Positions 4,692 through 54,885 of a stretch of DNA of 64,000 bases are shown in pieces. The DNA lies in NCBI GenBank assembly GCA_020891255.1, contig BQFW01000010.1, forward strand, positions 1,116,001 through 1,180,000. Reading direction: 5' to 3'. Below the pieces are notes generated by a model, which was not told the origin of the DNA, searched no databases, and worked only from the letters and a program-made list of their open reading frames with translations. Within the stretch, counting starts at the first letter, position 1, and every line of letters starts with the position of its first letter. The position numbers were made by a program, and so were the translations under genes. Source of the DNA: Entomortierella parvispora E1425. Taxonomy: Eukaryota > Fungi > Mortierellomycota.

Positions 4692-6015
4692 AAAAAAAGA
4701 AAAAAAGAAAGAACAGACAACAAAGAAGGCCGTTTGTGCTCGTTTCTGCACTCCACCAAGGAGGATGGGCAAGCCCCTGCCTGCTGTACCCCCTTTTGTC
4801 TATTTTTTGACAATGGTGCCCGTTCTCTTCTGCTTCTCTGCCTCGCCCATGACGGCAGCGACAATAAGGCAGGTCAGAGGGCCTTGTTGTGGAAATACGT
4901 CGAGGAAACAGCCCTCCGCCTTTGCGAGCAGAGCATCAAACAAGCTGTCAAAACATCTCTCATGATATCCAGCGTCCAAGCGTCTATCCCAAAAGAGGAG
5001 AAGCCCTGTCCACCGCCCAACTCTGCCTCTCGAAGGGGCCGCCAAATGTTATTACGGAAATGACATAAAACGATAATCTCGACTTCAAGGATCACACTTG
5101 CAGGAACAACGCTGTTTTGAGAGTTTTGAGCCCACTTTGTTGTCAAAAATGTATTCCCATGCCACCCACAGCGATCAACGGCGAATCTGATCAAGCCCTG
5201 CTTGTTGCTTGGCGCAAGGCGAGCACAGGACGGAGTGAAAGGTAAGATTATAACAGGAAAAAAACCGAGGATTGACCTCTGCATGGTTATTCTTGCACCA
5301 GGAGGACAAAATAGCCGAGTTTGCTCTTTTCTCAAAAAGCTCTCGCTTTGCCTTTGTGCAATTGCCATAGGAGACGCGGCTACGAATAACAGCGCCAATT
5401 GCAATTTGAAATAGGGTAGATGATGCCCATGTTCTAAAACCTGCGGTGCGCCTGGTTCCATCGACTCTGCAGGGTCGGGATACATGCAGTGAATCGTTGC
5501 ACCCCAATGGAATTAACTCCCCAACCTGATTACCAACCTTTCCTTGCCTGCGAAGTCTAAAGCAGCAATGCCGTCAATTCGTTTTTCATCTTGTCGCACC
5601 TATTCTCCGTTCGGGAGGTTGGAAACATCCAACGGACTTTTAGATAACCGCCGCATGGGCCCTATCTCAGAGTCGCAAAACAAAAAATCAAGAAGCGCGC
5701 AAACCAGCCACGAAAGCTTGAAACGGGGGTCTCGCCCCACCAACGGATTTCTGCTTTTGGACCCTTTTTGATTCACGAGGATCGGGTCTTGTCTTTTTTT
5801 TTGTCTTTGCTACTTCCTTGCAGCGCGCCTATATTACTTGGGCCACATTGACGCCTTTCCTCTTTCATATCTTGCTCATCATCCTTTCCAAAGCACCCAA
5901 GAAACACTCTACCCCTATACCACAAAATCTGAGAGCACAATCTCCACACCCACTCCACCTTTACGCCCCACCCCAATCTGCGCCCTTCTTGCACATCCCA
6001 CATCTTACACAAAAC

Positions 6016-6848
6016 ATGGAAAACCCTCAACAACAACAACCCATGACCGCCGTCCGGGTTATCAGTGCCGCCAATGGTAACCCTGGACCCCTGGGACTCT
6101 TCGCCTTCGCAGTGACAACCAGTAAATTGAAGATTGAGCTAACTAAAGCTCTACGCTGAGCAGTTGAACATTCAATCTATACCTTTCGAGGAACACAAGA
6201 AAACGCCCTAATACCCGTAAAACTCCTGTCTTTTGTAATACTATTAAATTAGTCATTGCCAATCTATACCATATTGGCGCCGGCGTGCCACCGGATGGCG
6301 GAGACGCTCTTCTTCTCGGCTTTGCATTATGGTACGGAGGCATTGTCCAGATTCTAGCCGGCATGTGGTCCATGAAGGTCGGCAACACATTCGAGGCCAC
6401 AGCCTTTTCATCCTTTGGTGCCTACTGGGCTGCCTATGGATTCATGTTCCTTCCCGGATCTGGCATTCAAGAGTCGTATGCCAATGCTCCACCAGAGGCC
6501 TTCCAGAATGCGTTGGGTATTTTTATTCTCGTCTGGGCATTCATGGCCCTTATTTTGACTGTGGGAACGACCCGATCCACGATTGCAACCGTGCTGATGT
6601 TTGTCTTCCTGGACATCCATTTGCTGTTCTTGGCCGGTCAAGAGTTTGGCCATCATCCTCCAGGAGCATACCCACAAAGGATCGGATGCGCGTTTGGCAT
6701 CTTGACCGCACTCTTGGCATTTTGGAATGGGGCTGCTTCCCTTTGGCTACCCTCCAACAGTCATGTCCTTTTGCCAGTTGGACATCTGAACTGGGGTCAG
6801 AAGCGAGTTATCGGTCGAGACACTAAGCAACAAGTTTACAATGTATGA
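6016..6848 (+). CDS. GPR1/FUN34/YaaH (Ato/Ady2/SatP-like) acetate/ammonia transporter; join(6016..6121,6253..6848)
   Basis: Signature NPGPLGLFAFAVTT, then GFALWYGGIVQILAGMW and NTFEATAFSSFGAYW, with several TM helices. The GTAAAT..TTAG intron restores the frame. Confidence 0.92.
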
Positions 6849-7007
6849 TACAACATCCAAAAACAGCAGCAATGATAGTAACGAATAAACGGATTGGAAC
6901 CATGCATCAAAAAAAGTGCAAATTGGTGGCGTCGATAATTCGTCACCTGATACACTGACTCAAAATCTTCGAGCAACAGATGAGCATTCATTCCCTTACC
7001 ACTCACC

Positions 7008-8513
7008 ATGACCAATCCCGCGGTGGCAAAATGGCTAGAAGAGATTGCCTCGGCTAAAGCAAAGGCTCAAGCTAAGACACCCAAGGTGTCTCCGCTGAAT
7101 ACCATTGCCACGGACAACGGCTCAAAAGTCGCCTTGAGTGGATCGCAGTCCAATGATCTATCAAAAGGCAAGACGATAATGTCCGCTTCTCCGTATGGTA
7201 TATTTCCTTTATTTGATCTCAAGACCCGCAAGAAGCAGCTTAGACTCGTCTTACCTCCACCTCCTACCAAACCTGGCCCGGGCGAATGCTGTGGGAACGA
7301 TTGTAACCCATGTATCAACACTCTTTATCAAGAAGATCTAGCCGAACATCAAGAACGTGTCCGTAATTTAAAGGCCGCATATGAACACGCCTGTCTAGAA
7401 TTGGAACGCGGGAAAGAACAGGATGACTTCTTGCCTGCGCCCTCTTCCCCACTATCAACAAAATCAACGGCAATAGTGCTAGAGGACAAGGATCAAAAGA
7501 CTGGAGGAATGAGCCTTCGATCGTATCGACCATTCAAAATCCTGCGAAAGGATTATTTGAACGACAACACGCTCTTGGTGGTTTGCGACACACCAATGCC
7601 ATCACCGCGGGGAACCCCTACGGAAGCGTTTCCACCCGCAGTAAACAGGTCAGGCCTAGGGGATGGTCCCCTCGAAAGCATGTTTCATATCTTGATCCGG
7701 TTCAGGAACGGCTCAGATGATTATCTCACCAAGGCCTTTACGCCCGTTGCATTGAAGGCGGAAGGTGACAGGAAAGACGAGGGCATGGAGGGCAAGCTGA
7801 CCTTTATGATTAAGCTTTACCCGACACCTCATCTGACCTCGGACATGTTTCGTAGACTACGAGTGGGACCTGAAGGCGATGACAGCAGCATGTTGTACCT
7901 GCGAGGGCCGATTCATACCAGTCGAACCCCACTCAAGGATGGCTCTATCGATACTATACCCCTACCAGAAGCAGCAAGAAAGACAAGGGCAAGGAATCAC
8001 AGGATAGTCATGATCGCTGCTGGATCAGGGATCACCCCTATGTACCAACTCTTGCAGCGCTTGCATCACGATGAGATGCAGGCGGATCGCCATGGAAACT
8101 CGAGGCAAGAAATAGACCTGATATATTGTAATCGTACCAAGAATGATATATGGCTACGGCAGGAACTTCAGCAACTGAAAACCGACCCTGCAATTGCGGA
8201 CGAGAGTCCTGCTAACCCATGGAGACGCAGGACGGTCCGGATCCAACATGTTCTCTCATCTTCTTTATCGAATCATCCTGACGAAAAGCAAGAGGAGGAG
8301 TACTTCCATTCAGGACGAATCACACTTGATTTACTACGCGATACTCTCCAACATAGCTTGCAGAAGGAGCCAGTCGCGGCCGAAGACGACACTCTTCAAA
8401 TTTTGATATGTGGCCCACCATCCTTTAACACAGATGTCTCGAGGATGCTCCTTCAGCTCGGGTACTCGTCATCGTCGCTAGAAAATCGTTGCGAGATTCA
8501 TATTCTGGAATGA
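7008..8513 (+). CDS. NADH-cytochrome b5 reductase-like (CYB5RL-type) flavoprotein with N-terminal Cys-cluster 'oxidoreductase-like' domain
   Basis: PPPTKPGPGECCGNDCNPCINTLY domain; FNR-family motifs IKLYP, YLRGP, MIAAGSGITPMYQL, LIYCNRT and ILICGPPSF; single-exon 501-aa ORF. Confidence 0.85.
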   Translation: MTNPAVAKWLEEIASAKAKAQAKTPKVSPLNTIATDNGSKVALSGSQSNDLSKGKTIMSASPYGIFPLFDLKTRKKQLRLVLPPPPTKPGPGECCGNDCNPCINTLYQEDLAEHQERVRNLKAAYEHACLELERGKEQDDFLPAPSSPLSTKSTAIVLEDKDQKTGGMSLRSYRPFKILRKDYLNDNTLLVVCDTPMPSPRGTPTEAFPPAVNRSGLGDGPLESMFHILIRFRNGSDDYLTKAFTPVALKAEGDRKDEGMEGKLTFMIKLYPTPHLTSDMFRRLRVGPEGDDSSMLYLRGPIHTSRTPLKDGSIDTIPLPEAARKTRARNHRIVMIAAGSGITPMYQLLQRLHHDEMQADRHGNSRQEIDLIYCNRTKNDIWLRQELQQLKTDPAIADESPANPWRRRTVRIQHVLSSSLSNHPDEKQEEEYFHSGRITLDLLRDTLQHSLQKEPVAAEDDTLQILICGPPSFNTDVSRMLLQLGYSSSSLENRCEIHILE

Positions 8514-41157: not shown

Positions 41158-41764
41158 GAGGATGTGATGTGTCGTGCGTGGGTCAGTCTTTTCGGAGGAC
41201 GATTGGACGAGAACACAGGCAACAGGGTGATGCAGAGAGGGAAATGAGGAGAAGCGATGTGGAATCAGGGCAAGCGGGGGCAGCTGCACTGGTCTGCTCT
41301 CTGTTCTTTTTTTGAGGAAGAACGTCGATCAGATAAGACACGCACGTGACCATTATATGTTCCCCGTGTCGTCCCGTCCCGTCCGTGTCCCGCCGTGCGG
41401 TCACTGACCTGACACAGCGACAGGGACGGCGATCGGTGGCGCCAGGATGGGCGGGGCGAGCAAGAGAGGGCGAGCGAGCGAGCGAGCGACAACACAAAAA
41501 GAAGCCAAAAGAAGATCATCTCTCTTTTTTTCGTTTCTCTTTTTTTCTTTCAACTCCTCTCTCCTCTCTATCCCCCGCGGTCGAATTCATAATGTAACTA
41601 TCTGCGCATCATCTATACTTCACATGCTCTTTCATTGCCGCTGCTGTTGTCCTTCCTGTCTCTTGCTGCTGCTGATCAGGCCCCACCCTGCCTGCTGCCG
41701 GCCCTGAATTCTTTATTTTTTTTTGTTTCTTGTAATGTTTTCTGCGCAGGTTCATCTCCTTTAG

Positions 41765-43517
<1,753 letters not shown>

Positions 43518-46238: not shown

Positions 46239-46692
46239 TTATCAGATTGAAAAACACAAGCCTCGACGCCCTCGACTCATCGTGCATACCCGGGTAAAGA
46301 AAGTCTGAGAATGAGCCAAACAGCAGAGGGAAAAACAACCAAACAGCTAAGGGCAGAGCGGAGTGCGTTCGTGCCTGAACCTAATTGCGCAAAAACTAAA
46401 AGAAGCAGAACACTTGGAACAGTCCATCTACAACATACTGTACCCAGGAAGGCCGCTCTCGCCCCTCCCCGGGGTTTTTTCATGTTGCTGAATGAACGAG
46501 TGAGTTATCAGATCGAAAGAAATGGCGGAGGGGGGATTTGAGGCCCAGCCGGGTGAAGTGAGACGACAAACAGAAATCAACCGTTCCTGAATCAATCAGT
46601 TCCTCAGTCACTCAGTCACTCAGTCACTCAGTCACCCACTCAGTCACCCACTCAGCTCGCCTTCCTTCGCGCGCGCCAAAGGGATCTGATAA
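46239..46692. promoter_or_regulatory. Three exact ATCTGATAA GATA elements (46239-46247 minus, 46505-46513 minus, 46684-46692 plus) upstream of the repeat surface-protein gene
   Basis: Read directly from the sequence. They match the ATCWGATAA consensus of iron-responsive GATA repressors (SreA/Fep1/Sfu1 class). A TATATAA follows at 46807-46813. Confidence 0.7.
46603..46655. repeat. Tandem array of CTCAGTCA octamers (five full copies, two CCCA spacers)
   Basis: ctcagtca x4, ccca, ctcagtca, ccca, ctcag, located between the second and third GATA elements. Confidence 0.85.
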
Positions 46693-46918: not shown

Positions 46919-49900
46919 ATGCATCTCGCTGCAGCTGTTGTTGTCGCCTCTTTGGCGGCGGTTGCAAATGCTCAGTCAGCATACTTCCCATTCACACCTG
47001 AAGGTTCTTGCGTTTCTGGATGCACCAACGTAAGTCTCCCTTCTATTGCTACTGCAGCCCTTAGTCGCTCCTCTCAGTTACCATATTCGCGTCTGACTTT
47101 CAGCGATCTGTCGTGCATGGAACAGCCCTCTCTAACGTCGATGCTTCCTTCTCTGCATGGAACAATAGTCTGTCGGAAAGGCCATCTTCGATGGATACGA
47201 CGATCTGGATGAATATGGACCTAACTTCATCAAGTCGCTCTCATTCACTTTCGAGCGTGGCACTCCCAACACTGTCGCTTTCATGACTAAGGCTGGTATG
47301 TGCATGGGCAAGTGCCCACAGCCTGAGTTGGATCTGTACACTGATAACTACCCTATCAAGCTGGCCTGGTACAACTCCCACAAGGGCGACACACCTCCCG
47401 CTCGCCCAGTCTCCACTACCACTACCACCACCACCACCACCACCACCACTATTGTAGCCCCTACCACCACTACCGACACCCCAACCACCACCACTGCTGC
47501 CCCCGTGCCTTCCCCTACCTTCATCTCCGAGTACTTCCCCTTCTTCCCTGATGGCCCTTGCGTTTCTACATGCTGTCTTGTAAGTATTTACCATGTCTGC
47601 CATCATCACTGCCTCCAAATATTCTTCCAGTTCTCTAATGTCGCGTTGAAATCCTTAGACTGCCGGTCTCAGTTTCTTCCCCAACTACACTGAGGATCCC
47701 ACGAGCCCTTACTTCTTGGAGTCTCTTTCTTATACCTTCGAGCGCGGTTCGCCAAAGACCCAGGCTTTCATGGCCAAGTCTGGTCGCTGCATTGCCTCTT
47801 GCCCCAAGCCCGAGCAGGAGCTTTACCAGGGACAGTACAACTCAAAGTTGGTTTGGTACCAGTCTAAGGTCCCTGTTGCCTCTCCTACCCCCACCACCAC
47901 TACGACCACCGTCGCTCCTGAGCCCACTGTCGCCCCAGTTGATCCCGCCTACCCCTTCCAGCCCAACGGTGCCTGCGTTTCTGGATGCACCAACACGGTC
48001 GGTGTTGCTATGTTCCCCAACTACTCTGAGGACCCCAAGTCTCCTTACTTCATCGAGTCTTTGTCGTACACATTCGACCGCGGTTCCCCCAAGACTGGCG
48101 AGTTCATGACCAAGGCCGGTATGTGCATGGGCAGATGTCCTCAGGCTGAGCTTGATCTCTACACTGAGCAGTACCCTGCTCAGTTGGAGTGGTACAATGC
48201 CCACAAGCCCACTGTCACCGAGGCACCCGTCACCACCACCACCGAGGCACCAGTTGTTCCCACCACCACCGAAGAGCCTGTTGTCCCCACTGAGGCTCCA
48301 GTCACTACCACCACCACCACTGCTCCCGAGCCCACTGTCGCCCCAGTTGACCCCGCCTACCCCTTCCAGCCCAACGGTGCTTGCGTTTCTGGATGCACCA
48401 ACTCTGTTGGAAAGGCCATGTTCCCCAACTACTCTGAGGATCCCAAGTCCCCTTACTTCATTGAGTCCTTGTCCTACACCTTCGATCGCGGCTCTGCCAA
48501 GACCGGCGAGTTCATGACCAAGGCCGGTATGTGCATGGGTAGATGTCCTCAGCCTGAGCTTGACCTCTACACTGAGCAGTACCCTGCTCAGTTGGAATGG
48601 TACAATGCCCACAAGCCCACTGTCACCGAGGCACCCGTCACCACCACCACCGAGGCACCCGTCACCACCACCACCGAGGCACCAGTTGTTCCCACCACCA
48701 CCGAAGAGCCTGTTGTCCCCACTGAGGCACCAGTCACTACCACTACCACCGCTGCTCCCGAGCCCACTGTCGCCCCAGTTGACCCCGCCTACCCCTTCCA
48801 GCCCAACGGTGCTTGCGTTTCTGGATGCACCAACTCTGTTGGAAAGGCCATGTTCCCCAACTACTCTGAGGATCCCAAGTCCCCCTACTTCATTGAGTCC
48901 TTGTCCTACACCTTCGATCGCGGTTCCGCCAAGACTGGCGAGTTCATGACCAAGGCCGGTATGTGCATGGGCAGATGTCCCCAGGCTGAGCTTGATCTCT
49001 ACACTGAGCAGTACCCTGCTCAGTTGGAGTGGTATAACAACAATAAGGGCGGCGTTGTCCAGCCCACCACCACTGAGGCTCCTGTTGTCCCAACTGAGGC
49101 TCCAGTTACCACCACTACCACTGATGCCCCCCAGCCTACCGTTGGACCCGTCAACCCCGCTTACCCCTTCCAGCCCAACGGTGCTTGCGTTTCTGGATGC
49201 ACCAACTCTGTTGGAAAGGCCATGTTCCCCAACTACTCTGAGGACCCCAGCTCTCCTTACTTCATTGAGTCCTTGTCCTACACCTTCGATCGTGGTTCCG
49301 CCAAGACTGGCGAGTTCATGACCAAGGCTGGTATGTGCATGGGCAGATGTCCTCAGGCTGAGCTTGACCTCTACACTGAGCAGTACCCTGCTCAGTTGGA
49401 GTGGTACAACAACAACAAGGGCGGCGTTGTCCAGCCCACGACCGGTCCCGTTACCACCACCGACGCGCCTGTTCAGCCCACCGCTACCACCACCAACACC
49501 CCCGTTGTCCCCACTGGCGGCCCTGTCAACCCTGCTTACCCCTTCCAGCCCAACGGTGCCTGTGTTGCTGGATGCACCAACACTGTCGGAAAGGCAATGT
49601 TCCCCAACTACTCTGAGGACCCCAGCTCTCCTTACTTCATTGAGTCCTTGTCCTACACCTTCGAGCGCGGTTCCGCCAAGACTGGTGAGTTCATGACCAA
49701 GGCTGGTATGTGCATGGGCAGATGCCCCCAGGCTGAGTTGGATCTCTACACCAACCAGTACCCTGCCCAGTTGGAGTGGTATCTCAAGAACAAGGGTGGC
49801 GTTGTCCAGCCCACGACTGGCCCTGTTACCCCCACCAGCACTACCACCAGCACTCCTACCGTTCCCACTGGTGGTCCCATTACTCCTCCCACTGGCGGCT

Positions 49901-51435
49901 TTGACTACCCCTTCAAGCCCAACGGCGCCTGTGTTGCTGGATGCACCAACTCTGTCGGAAAGGCCATGTACCCCAACTACTCTGAGGATCCCAAGTCCCC
50001 CTACTTCATTGAGTCTTTGTCCTACACCTTCGATCGCGGTTCCGCCAAGACTGGCGAGTTCATGACCAAGGCCGGTATGTGCATGGGCAAGTGCCCTCAG
50101 GCTGAGCTTGACCTCTACACTGAGCAGTACCCCGCTCAGTTGGAGTGGTATAACAAGAACAAGGGCGGCATTGTTCAGCCCACGACTGGCCCTGTCAACC
50201 CCACCACTACCACTGGTAAGCCCACTGTCCCTACTGGTGGTCCCGTTACTCCCCCTCCCGGCGGCTTCGTCTACCCCTTCAAGCCCAACGGCGCCTGTGT
50301 TGCTGGATGCACCAACTCTGTCGGAAAGGCCATGTTCCCCAACTACTCTGAGGATCCCAAGTCACCTTACTTCATTCAGTCCTTGTCCTACACCTTCGAT
50401 CGCGGCTCTGCCAAGACTGGCGAGTTCATGACCAAGGCCGGTATGTGCATGGGCAAGTGCCCTCAGGCTGAGCTTGACCTCTACACCGAGCAGTACCCTG
50501 CCCAGTTGGAGTGGTATAACAAGAACAAGGGCGGAGTGACCAACCCTGTTGACCCCACCAACCCTGTGGATCCCACCAACCCTGTGGACCCCACTAATCC
50601 CACTGGTCCCATCACTCCTCCTCCCGGCGGCTTTGACTATCCCTTCAAGCCCAACGGTGCCTGTGTTGCTGGATGCACCAACTCTGTCGGAAAGGCCATG
50701 TTCCCCAACTACTCTGAGGATCCCAAGTCCCCTTACTTCATTGAGTCCTTGTCCTACACCTTCGATCGCGGCTCTGCCAAGACTGGCGAGTTCATGACCA
50801 AGGCCGGTATGTGCATGGGCAAGTGCCCTCAGGCTGAGCTTGACCTCTACACCGAGCAGTACCCCGCTCAGTTGGAGTGGTATAACAAGAACAAGAACGG
50901 AGTGACCAACCCTGTTGACCCCACCAACCCTGTGGATCCCACCAACCCTGTGGACCCCACTAATCCCACTGGTCCCATCACCCCTCCTCCCGGCGGATTC
51001 GATTACCCCTTCAAGCCCAACGGCGCCTGTGTTGCTGGATGCACCAACGAGGTCGGAAAGGCCATGTTCCCCAACTACACTGAGGATCCCACGTCCCCTT
51101 ACTTCATCGAGTCCTTGTCCTACACTTTCGAGCGCGGTTCCGCCAAGACTGGCGAGTTCATGACCAAGGCCGGTATGTGCATGGGCAAGTGTCCCCAGGC
51201 CGAGCTTGATCTCTACACCGAGCAGTACCCAGCTCAGTTGGAGTGGTACCTCAAGAACAAGAACTTTGGTCAGATCAACGGCACCTTGACCGCCACCGGT
51301 ACCGCCGTTGTCTCGCCCACTGGCCCCGTTGTCTCGCCCACCAACACCCACGATAGCAGCGCTGTCAAGTTTGCTACCTCGGGTATTGCTGCGACCATCT
51401 TGGCTGCCCTTTGCGCGGTCGTTGTTGCCATTTAA
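46919..51435 (+). CDS. GPI-anchored cell-surface protein (~1432 aa) with 11 tandem ~85-aa 4-Cys domains and T/P/E-rich linkers; join(46919..47029,47169..47579,47659..51435)
   Basis: Signal peptide MHLAAAVVVASLAAVANA; unit YPFxPNGACVxGCTN...FMTKAGMCMGxCPQxELDLYTEQYPAQLEWY; GPI-type C-terminus DSSAVKFATSGIAATILAALCAVVVAI; two phase-0 GTAAGT..TAG introns. Confidence 0.88.
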
Positions 51436-52148: not shown

Positions 52149-54885
52149 ATGAGCGTAATCCAGGACGACTCTGACACCATGACGGCTTCATTCTCCGCGG
52201 CCCCAGCCGTGGCCCCGCCCTTTGAGGTTAGCGACCCCTGGGGCGCTACCACAGCTAGAGGATTGAACCCGTTAGACTTGAGCAACATCCTGTGTAGGTG
52301 ACAGTCTCTTTCACTGAGACCAGCTGGAATGGGTCCCATGGGGAAGTTTTTTTGTGCCTTTTGTTCAGCAACTCTAACAGTCGCTTTTGTATCTTGTCGC
52401 TTTGTCGCCACCAACATGGGGATTCTTGTTACGTAGCAGGAATGCCCTTGCCAAGTATCTACACCACCGCCTTTGATCTGGCCCAGCCCTCAGGCGGAAA
52501 GATCACAGTGTCTGCTATCCACAAGATTGTGGCTGTCAGTGGATTGCCGTCTGCATCAGTGAATCAGGTACCAACCAATAGACTGTTTGGATTGCCAAGG
52601 ATACTTCATACCGATGATGAGGTTCTCACTAGGAAGCAGAGGCAACAAGTACTCAAAATAATAATCCTCTTGATGGTCATAGATCCTGAACATCGCTGTG
52701 GCGCCAACCCGATCAAGGATCTCCAAGGGGGAGTGCAGCGTGACGTTGGCCCTTGTGGCAATGGCCCAGAAGAATATGGATCTGTCGATCGAGAATCTGA
52801 TTGCGCACCGGGAAGGTAATAGCGGGAAAAATACAACTCTAGTCACTCCCATTGCATTGAGGTGCTTGTCGAGTACTGATATCTTTGTTGTTATTGCGTT
52901 TGTTTAGACCTACCCATTCCCCATCTGCCAGGTCTCGAAGCGATTGACTTTGGTAGCGCCAGGGAGACCAACATTTATGCAACGAGTTCGACGCTGCCCC
53001 TTCAACACCACCCTGTTCACGTGGGTAGTGCAGTCTCGGATCCTTGGAGAAGCTCCGTGGTATCCACTCTCAAGAATGGCAGTGGAGGATACCCACCTGC
53101 ACCCTCAAGCTTGGCATCCCCGCCCATTACTTCGGATCAGATTAATCGGGATGCAGACCCGGAGATAACCCGCAAGGATATGTACCAATGGTTCTTGCAC
53201 CTGGACACGATCAGGATTAGCTTTGCCCCCGAGAAAGAAGGCATCTTCTTATTTAAGCATACCAACTACATTGTGGAGTCAAAGGTAGAACGGAGAATGG
53301 GGAGTATGATGGATATTTCATTGTTCTCTGTCAGTTTCGCTAATAGTGTTTTACTCTCATTCATAGAACCGACAAACGACTGTCATCAGGAGATATAGTG
53401 ATTTTTGGTGGCTGCTGGAGGTCCTTGCCAAGCGATTTCCTTTCCGAATCTTGCCCAACCTGCCACCCAAAAGACTCGGAGGTAAAAATTGCAGATATAT
53501 GATGTAAAGCGACTGCTGTGAGAACTCCTTGCGTTTATATTAACCCGTCTCTTTCATTTATTTAGTGGCGGACGAGGCATTCCTGGAGCGCCGACTGAGA
53601 GGTCTGACCCGATTTATGAACGCGCTGATGCGTCACCCTGTCCTCAAAAACGATCCGTTGGTGATTTCCTTCTTGACAGAGCCAGTCGTAAGTCTATTTC
53701 CAATTTTTTTTATTTTTTTTATTTGATCAGCTGGAGGACATTCTTTGACCTGACCGACCTTCGAACATGCTTTTGTCAACTGCTTATATCCAGGAACTGG
53801 CTCTTTGGAGAAAGAATGTAGTCATTTCGACCGAGGACGAGTTCATTGCCAAGATACCCATTTCGGAGACACTCTCGAAGCAAATTCCCATGACTTTGGA
53901 CCTGGAGTTGGAAACGATTAAGAGACGCTTGCCTGCTTCGATTGAGTATTACCGAAACATGGTTCATGTTTTGGATCGTGTCCAGAAGAGAACCGAGGCC
54001 AACGCTGGAGATTATACCCGATTCAGTCTTTCGATCAAGTATGCCCAAGATTTTCAATAGGATCCAAGGATTTAGAAAGGATCACCTGAATGCCGTATGC
54101 CCTGAAATGGTTTTGCTGATACTAAACAAACCCATTTCTTTTTCTTCCTTTAACTAGAGCCTTGGCTGATTGTGAGAGGCAATGTCATATTGAAGAATGT
54201 TACAACTGCGGACAGTTGAGTCATGGATATGACAGGATAGGAACGCATCTTCAACAAACTGGAAACTTGCTCGAGCATGAGGCCCGGGATACACGTGAGG
54301 GCATGGTCGAAAGTTTGAAGCGTCATCGGGACTTGTTGGTCTCTGTGAAGGAGCTGTTGTTAAGGCGAGACCACGCACGAGACATGGGCAACATGACCGA
54401 AGTCTTGAAGAGAAGAGTAACGGCTAACGAGGCCAAGCTGAAGACGCTCAGAGCCTCGGCTGCGACGGCTGCTAACGCTGCAACATCGAACAACGCCGAC
54501 CCTGCTGCAGCGGCTGGAATTTACGATTATCAGATCGAGAAGGTCCTTCACAACATCCACTCGGTAAGGACTATTAATCCTCTAGCAAGAAAAAAAAAAA
54601 AAAAAAAAAAAAAAACGAAATAGACTCTCTAACCTGTCCTTTTTTTCTTTTACTCGCTCTCAGGATCAAGCAGAATTGGAAATCCAAGCACAGAGGGCTA
54701 TCTTGGTTCAACACACGCTCTGGATGGAGATTACTTTTTTCCACAAGAACCACGCGTTGATTGCGGGCATGTATCAGGCCTTTGTGCACGAGCAGATGAA
54801 GACGAGTCAGAGTCTCTTTGACAACTGGAAGTCGCTTTCGCCAGTTGTTCATGATCTCCCCATGGATGTGAATGGATTCAACTGA
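52149..54885 (+). CDS. MVP1: Sorting nexin Mvp1/SNX8 (PX-BAR); multi-exon
   Basis: [48 protein letters not shown] and [12 protein letters not shown], followed by a BAR-type helical C-terminus. Confidence 0.9.

Follow-up and report, generated by a model that had tools for sequence, protein, structure and literature searches.

An eleven-unit protein with a GPI-type tail and iron-type promoter boxes in Entomortierella parvispora, a candidate for haem or iron capture at the cell wall

What would a soil fungus do with a predicted surface protein assembled from eleven copies of one small four-cysteine domain, and when would it make such a protein? The question is raised by a gene of Entomortierella parvispora E1425 (assembly GCA_020891255.1; 38.9 Mb, 20 contigs) located at positions 46919 to 51435 of the window, i.e. 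the whole stretch of 64,000 nucleotides that was analysed, corresponding to positions 1,116,001-1,180,000 of contig 10 (BQFW01000010.1). The explanation that we place first, and to which we give about an even chance, is that of an iron-repressed wall protein, held by a glycosylphosphatidylinositol (GPI) anchor, that captures an iron-bearing ligand, with haem as the favoured candidate. This explanation builds on the anatomy of the gene, a fold prediction, the spread of the family, and promoter boxes that also mark iron-uptake genes, from which iron repression, a wall location, ligand binding, and an inward relay are inferred.

The gene lies on the + strand and comprises three exons, join(46919..47029, 47169..47579, 47659..51435), starting with an ATG at 46919 and closing with a stop codon that ends at 51435. 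Both introns (47030-47168 and 47580-47658) are of the GT-AG type with GTAAGT...TAG borders, lie in phase 0, and are placed two codons past the first CxxxC of units 1 and 2, respectively. Around both junctions, the spliced frame agrees residue for residue with the annotated orthologues P0001-P0003. The parts of the gene are as follows.

46919..47029, + strand: exon 1, signal peptide (~18 residues) and start of unit 1 up to CVSGCTN; matches the N-terminus of P0001
47030..47168, + strand: intron 1, GTAAGT...TAG, phase 0; same position in the paralogues on contigs 13 and 17
47169..47579, + strand: exon 2, remainder of unit 1, poly-Thr linker, and start of unit 2 (from 47523)
47580..47658, + strand: intron 2, GTAAGT...TAG, phase 0, at the homologous position in unit 2
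47659..51435, + strand: exon 3, remainder of unit 2, units 3-11, Thr/Pro and VDPTNP linkers, GPI-type tail, and stop
47941..51267, + strand: intron-less array of units 3-11, 273 nt per unit; a species-specific clade in the unit tree
47941, 48349, 48781, 49153, 49528, 49897, 50263, 50629, and 50995, + strand: starts of units 3 to 11
51352..51432, + strand: GPI-type C-terminal signal, DSSAVKFATSG followed by a 16-residue hydrophobic end (51385-51432), by inspection

A first-pass annotation made from the nucleotide sequence had described a GPI-anchored protein with 11 tandem four-cysteine domains of helical character, spaced by mucin-like T/P/E or VDPTNP linkers, and this description of the protein was right in every particular that was checked. 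Exactly 11 units of ~90 residues were counted, each with two CX3C pairs (CxxxC ... CxxxC) ~45 residues apart, and the motifs that had been singled out, namely YPF, GACVxGC, FMTKAGMCMGxC (extending to FMTKAGMCMGxCPQ), and LYTxQYPAQLEWY, are invariant across units 3-11, whose gap-free alignment of 91 residues shows 81-96% identity. Tandem Repeats Finder reported periods of 432 and 366 (scores 1778 and 3035). Pairwise synonymous divergence (dS) between units ranges from 0.11 to 0.66, and the mean ratio of nonsynonymous to synonymous divergence (dN/dS) is ~0.18; the units are therefore old copies under purifying selection, and neither a chance similarity nor a recent artefact. The linkers contain 52-69% Ser/Thr/Pro, and each unit carries one N-x-S/T sequon (NYS or NYT) adjoining an invariant Asp. 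By inspection, the N-terminus reads as a signal peptide, MHLAAAVVVASLAAVANA followed by Q, and the last 27 residues are GPI-like, with small residues (DSSA), a short spacer, and a 16-residue hydrophobic end. The protein thus combines an N-terminal signal, a Ser/Thr-rich stalk, and an omega region with spacer and hydrophobic end, as GPI-anchored wall proteins do, and a similar GPI-type tail occurs in orthologues and in most single-unit relatives.

A profile search against 1.84 billion representative proteins returned 109 relatives at E <= 0.001, and all those that could be named were labelled “hypothetical” or “secreted”; literature searches returned no description of the family. The relatives come from Mortierellaceae, Mucorales (Mucor, Apophysomyces, Backusella, Circinella, Radiomyces, Dichotomocladium, Chlamydoabsidia, and Sporodiniella), Umbelopsis, Basidiobolus, and Malassezia; the majority consist of one unit preceded by a signal peptide and followed by a Ser/Thr tail and a GPI-type end. 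When exon 3 was used in a word-based search, the only multi-unit proteins recovered were three with 6-7 units, from Entomortierella chlamydospora, Linnemannia zychae, and L. exigua, and the multi-unit proteins of other species have 3-7 units (partial records included) compared to 11 in E. parvispora. In two Basidiobolus ranarum proteins (P0024 and P0090), a weak CBM19-like chitin-binding end replaces the GPI signal (19.3 and 15.5 bits, cut-off 20.1), which, if the resemblance holds, would give the family an additional means of wall attachment. A distant eight-cysteine, GPI-type member (the P0101 / P0120 cluster, 64 members) was seen in metagenomes only, where this type is found on >100 contigs of up to 375 kb from a eukaryote.

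The E. parvispora genome holds three further family loci besides the 11-unit gene. One paralogue found outside contig 10 shares 100% identity with EMPS_09488 of E. parvispora, which identifies the genome as that of this Mortierellaceae species. The locus on contig 13 encodes a one-unit GPI-anchored protein (P0004, 157 residues) with orthologues across Mortierellaceae, while contigs 17 and 5 each carry a copy of a gene in two exons whose secreted product has one unit, finishes with ...LDTPPPRP-stop, and lacks an anchor signal. These two copies were considered as truncated pseudogenes, a possibility ruled out by their splice sites, the intact two-exon gene, and a stop that is conserved in a metagenome orthologue (L024). 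They lie ~10 kb from contig ends (L012, G000:C17:9058-12312, and L014, G000:C5:7779-11006) and are 98.7% identical, including the 1.3 kb of upstream sequence that was compared; the block looks like a recent subtelomeric duplication. All paralogues share an intron at one position. According to the unit tree, unit 1 has its orthologues in the unit 1 of other species and unit 2 in their unit 2; the soluble paralogue clusters with unit 1, and E. parvispora units 3-11 form their own clade, which indicates that the 3' array was expanded or homogenised within the lineage.

A hint of when these genes may be used comes from their promoters. ATCWGATAA is the extended site of fungal iron-responsive GATA repressors (SreA, Fep1, Sfu1, and Urbs1). 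Across the 38.9 Mb of the genome this site occurs 498 times, compared to 207 for a reversed control (~0.013 per kb), a density from which about 0.014 clusters of three per kb are expected for the whole genome. The window contains 5 sites where 0.82 are expected, and three of these stand within 700 nt of the start codon of the 11-unit gene:

46239..46247, - strand: iron-type GATA box 1, ATCTGATAA, 680 nt before the ATG, in a patch conserved with the promoter of the soluble paralogue
46505..46513, - strand: iron-type GATA box 2, ATCTGATAA, 414 nt before the ATG, in a second patch conserved with that promoter
46684..46692, + strand: iron-type GATA box 3, ATCTGATAA, 235 nt before the ATG, kept in the metagenome orthologue L022
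46806..46812, + strand: TATA-like element TATATAA, by sequence inspection only

Clusters of this kind recur in the paralogues. The contig 13 paralogue has 3 boxes upstream (0.01 expected) and the contig 17 and contig 5 copies have 4 each, so that every one of the four family loci in the genome carries 3-4 exact ATCWGATAA boxes. The promoters of the 11-unit and contig 13 genes have no alignable similarity, and those of the 11-unit and contig 17 genes can be aligned over two short patches only, exactly the ones in which boxes 1 and 2 lie. For each of the three gene types, boxes are also present in metagenome relatives, four contigs being compared. Conservation of the box in orthologue L022 says little by itself, because overall identity between the two promoters is 86%. 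Boxes 2 and 3 have a (TCACTCAG)n / (CTCAGTCACCCA)n microsatellite between them (window 46575-46655); it is ~35 nt shorter in L022, and box spacing therefore varies.

Across the genome, pairs of same-strand boxes within 300 nt occur 20 times, compared to 0 for the control. FTR1, FET3-type oxidases, and ferric reductases are the canonical genes of reductive iron uptake, and among the places with such pairs are a ferric reductase locus, with 9 boxes, and the DNA between an FTR1 permease gene and a divergently transcribed multicopper oxidase (FET3) gene, with 6. The 11-unit gene hence shows the clustered ATCWGATAA promoter sites that characterise an iron GATA regulon, and the promoter's link to iron, on which the first-pass annotation drew for its heme or metal suggestion, is well supported in silico.

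Exact sites were also recorded near genes outside the family. A multi-exon Pyr_redox_2 flavoprotein gene in the window (41789-43517, + strand; region 41328-43517) has a ATCAGATAA box 460 nt upstream, and a second Pyr_redox_2 gene (L019:5056-5940) has two boxes upstream; judging by sequence, these may encode an iron-regulated flavin oxidoreductase. On contig 11, a phytochelatin synthase gene (L018, G000:C11:485000-493000, at 6501-7844, + strand) is found ~1.3-2.5 kb downstream of a ATCTGATAA pair (4013 and 4036), and an open frame at 5367-6497 sits between the two, so that the boxes could serve either. Another exact ATCTGATAA site (window 54527-54535) lies downstream of the 11-unit gene, near small unannotated open reading frames.

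The domain itself is compact in prediction. An AlphaFold2 model of one unit, built from a 13-row alignment, has four helices (unit residues 11-24, 37-45, 50-63, and 68-88) at a mean predicted local distance difference test score (pLDDT) of 94 and a predicted template modelling score (pTM) of 0.81, and places the first CX3C in helix 1 and the second at the turn between helices 3 and 4. For the database searches, exons were submitted separately, with units 1 and 2 represented by their post-intron parts only. No Pfam family was matched by a single unit. Whole exons gave Pfam matches (DUF6438, DUF2865, Meleagrin, and others) in which no single stretch passes, and which we attribute to summed repeat noise because they are absent for single units. 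WSC, LysM, and CBM identities, which the annotation had already set aside, have no Pfam support in the window units. By sequence, no match was found in the PDB for a single unit, the family profile, or the Basidiobolus protein P0039, and the PDB matches of a Basidiobolus-type profile involved low-complexity tails only. Foldseek and VIA-align searches with two models yielded nothing above noise, and the ESM Atlas gave no usable match. By Pfam and the PDB, the domain therefore remains as unrecognised as it was first taken to be.

Its cysteines follow a regular scheme. The four core cysteines are near-universal across 134 distinct units, and a fifth and a sixth (after SLSxx and before WY) occur together in 68 units and alone in 0; a further N-terminal and C-terminal accessory pair likewise co-occur. 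Since accessory cysteines come strictly in pairs, they behave as disulfides would, which points to a twin-CX3C core with optional clamps, of which the Mortierellaceae unit is the minimal version. Disulfide pairing in the units is accordingly a prediction from sequence patterns. Small Tim proteins of the mitochondrial intermembrane space, in which CX3C motifs are held by two disulfides, likewise have two such motifs on helices, but they differ in compartment, size (~45 residues separate the motifs here), number of helices, and function, and the resemblance is limited to the motif.

This scheme offers the one lead to a known family. Candida haemophores of the CFEM type are iron-regulated and serve haem-iron acquisition. 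Like the C. albicans proteins (soluble Csa2 and GPI-anchored Rbt5 and Pga7; PF05730; structure 4Y7S), the members of the present family are fungal and small and are predicted to be secreted, helical, and cysteine-stabilised, with Ser/Thr-rich stalks, GPI-type anchors, and both soluble and anchored paralogues, and they share an early C-x3-C, a later C-x3-5-C, and a conserved Asp that follows T/S, a likeness read from sequence. The CFEM consensus is PxC[A/G]x2Cx8-12Cx1-3[x/T]Dx2-5CxCx9-14Cx3-4Cx15-16C, with eight cysteines separated by gaps of 3, 8-12, about 5-10, 1, 9-14, 3-4, and 15-16 residues, and its conserved Asp is the haem-iron ligand (PMC13586796). Reduced forms are known, as ferric reductase N-termini keep 6 of the 8 cysteines (bioRxiv 10.1101/2022.05.25.493415). 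The Basidiobolus and Mortierellaceae forms of our family are homologous (hhalign probability 99.1%, E 4.8e-19), and the Basidiobolus units have eight cysteines in the CFEM order, C-x3-C-x7-C-x18-C-x-C-x15/16-C-x4/5-C-x15/16-C, including the CxC and the last gap. They differ from CFEM in a longer C3-C4 gap of 18, whose loop carries the family's DPxSPxFIxSLS, and in a C5-C6 gap of 15-16. Across the family, a near-invariant Asp (D31 of the unit) stands in a Y-S/T-x-D-P (T/S-x-D-P) motif and is a putative counterpart of Asp80 of Csa2. P0039 scores 23.1 bits (E 7.6e-5) against Pfam CFEM (PF05730), whose gathering cut-off is 22, and P0060 is labelled a CFEM-domain protein by UniRef.

The first-pass statement that the domain does not fit CFEM thus stands for the window units, which have only C1, C2, C6, and C7 of the eight CFEM cysteines and fail both the pattern and the Pfam model, but it does not extend to their CFEM-like Basidiobolus homologues, one of which passes the Pfam cut-off. 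For these reasons, the domain may be a reduced relative of CFEM, although the fold searches lend this no support; on the sequence patterns, we consider descent from CFEM, or a sister relationship, slightly more probable than its opposite, but we do not count the domain of the window as belonging to CFEM. For members of alignment A4, the best 25 of 49 families included no CFEM match. The genome also encodes one canonical CFEM domain (L015, G000:C6:2289733-2292921, open reading frame 1432-1935, + strand; 30.9-32.7 bits, cut-off 22), which in this Mortierellomycota genome is fused to collagen-like GAPG/PGHPG repeats, and to which the family has no similarity by BLASTP. No ATCWGATAA box was found in the L015 locus, 1.5 kb of upstream sequence being covered.

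Taken together, these observations are consistent with the following course of events. An iron-responsive GATA factor most likely represses transcription through the three ATCTGATAA boxes, so that the protein would be made when iron is scarce. It would then be secreted as a heavily O-glycosylated, GPI-anchored cell-wall protein displaying 11 compact four-helix domains on Thr/Pro stalks, each domain probably held by a twin-CX3C disulfide core. Each unit would bind an iron-bearing ligand, and haem is favoured because of the CFEM lead, by analogy with, and through possible descent from, the CFEM haemophores; the ligand may be contacted by the conserved Asp, by the aromatic YPF near the N-terminus, and at the FM and WY positions. 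When short of iron, E. parvispora may thus deploy three forms of the domain, namely a free unit, a unit on a short GPI stalk, and eleven units on a long glycosylated GPI stalk. The last would act as an outer-wall antenna that passes its ligand inward together with the soluble and short GPI paralogues, resembling the haem relay of Candida with its secreted Csa2, wall-resident Rbt5, and membrane-located Pga7 (bioRxiv 10.1101/2022.05.25.493415).

Several results weigh against this explanation. P0039 only just passes the CFEM cut-off, and none of six further Basidiobolus-type proteins that were scanned, P0060 included, gave a match; the window units have no Pfam CFEM match at any E-value shown; and hhalign, with the genome's one canonical CFEM domain as a single-sequence target, found no similarity to the family. 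A search for CFEM homologues with which to build a fuller target returned none. The family profile, moreover, matches no PDB sequence. SreA/Fep1-type iron sensors have a Cys-rich region between two GATA fingers, and among the four two-finger GATA genes of the genome (L026-L029; G000:C4:28150-28620, C12:1245492-1246121, C15:830327-830908, and C2:1150855-1151745) none showed C-x5-C-x8-C-x2-C between the fingers in the stretch read. A soil saprotroph may, finally, need haem less than a blood-borne yeast.

This last point leads to the main alternative to haem, in which the units of an iron-repressed wall protein, or its glycosylated array as a whole, would retain ferri-siderophores or Fe(III) for reductive or transporter pathways. 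Fit1-3 of S. cerevisiae are iron-starvation-induced, GPI-anchored, Ser/Thr-rich, and internally repetitive mannoproteins that raise iron capture by the wall, and the 11-unit protein, whose iron control, anchor, and capture role are predicted, would resemble them in each of these respects. The same promoter boxes would apply, the tandem-repeat GPI mannoprotein architecture fits, and a fungus that lives as a soil saprotroph or root associate would more obviously draw its iron from xenosiderophores than from haem. However, FIT repeats are short, without a folded cysteine-stabilised domain, and controlled by Aft1 instead of a GATA repressor, and no sequence relation is expected; the units here are conserved and well folded in prediction, and CFEM is the one family to which their sequence gives any hint. 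We therefore regard siderophore retention as unlikely, while keeping it as the foremost competitor of haem capture.

We hold a structural or adhesive wall mannoprotein, for which iron control would reflect general wall remodelling under starvation, to be similarly improbable. Variation in unit number between species (3-7 vs 11) with a species-specific expansion of 3' units is typical of adhesins, and the CBM19-like end of some Basidiobolus relatives, weak as it is (19.3 bits, cut-off 20.1), points to the wall. A conserved one-unit paralogue that is soluble and lacks an anchor is nonetheless hard to square with a purely structural or adhesive role. Aromatic, Met, and Asp positions exposed on the surface are under strong purifying selection, and the iron boxes were kept at every family locus although the remaining promoter has diverged beyond alignment. 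Far less probable still is a free-thiol chemistry in which reduced CX3C pairs would serve as chelators of Fe or Cu or as electron shuttles at the surface: such pairs are able to bind metals and the gene is iron-linked, but the secretory route leads into an oxidising wall, the accessory cysteines of relatives are strictly paired as disulfides would be, and the CX3C motifs sit on helix 1 and the helix 3-4 turn of a confidently packed predicted bundle.

Returning to iron or haem capture, a broader version of this explanation, which we advance tentatively and think less probable than the capture role itself, would make the 11-unit protein the multivalent outer-wall member of an ancient haemophore or iron-capture system spanning Mortierellomycota, Mucorales, Umbelopsis, Basidiobolus, and Malassezia, i.e. 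a reduced sister of CFEM that retains only the twin-CX3C core, works as a three-tier relay, and is switched by an iron GATA factor. According to a 2026 review, CFEM does not occur outside Ascomycota and Basidiomycota (PMC13586796); if the broader version is true, the CFEM superfamily would instead predate Dikarya.

Cell-wall iron capture is well described in yeasts and other Dikarya, through CFEM haemophores and FIT mannoproteins, and no description of it in early-diverging fungi was found in the searchable literature. To this setting, the present analysis adds the anatomy of the 11-unit gene, a picture of three architectures, the positional orthology of units 1 and 2, the co-occurrence of cysteines, the promoter footprint between paralogues, and the negative fold searches. 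The domain is without a Pfam model or a solved structure, and its relatives include Mucorales genera with human pathogens (Mucor and Apophysomyces). Iron is central to infection by Mucorales, and if the broader version holds, these fungi would have an unrecognised route of haem or iron uptake. Overall, the family offers a testable case of possible haem or iron capture among early-diverging fungi.

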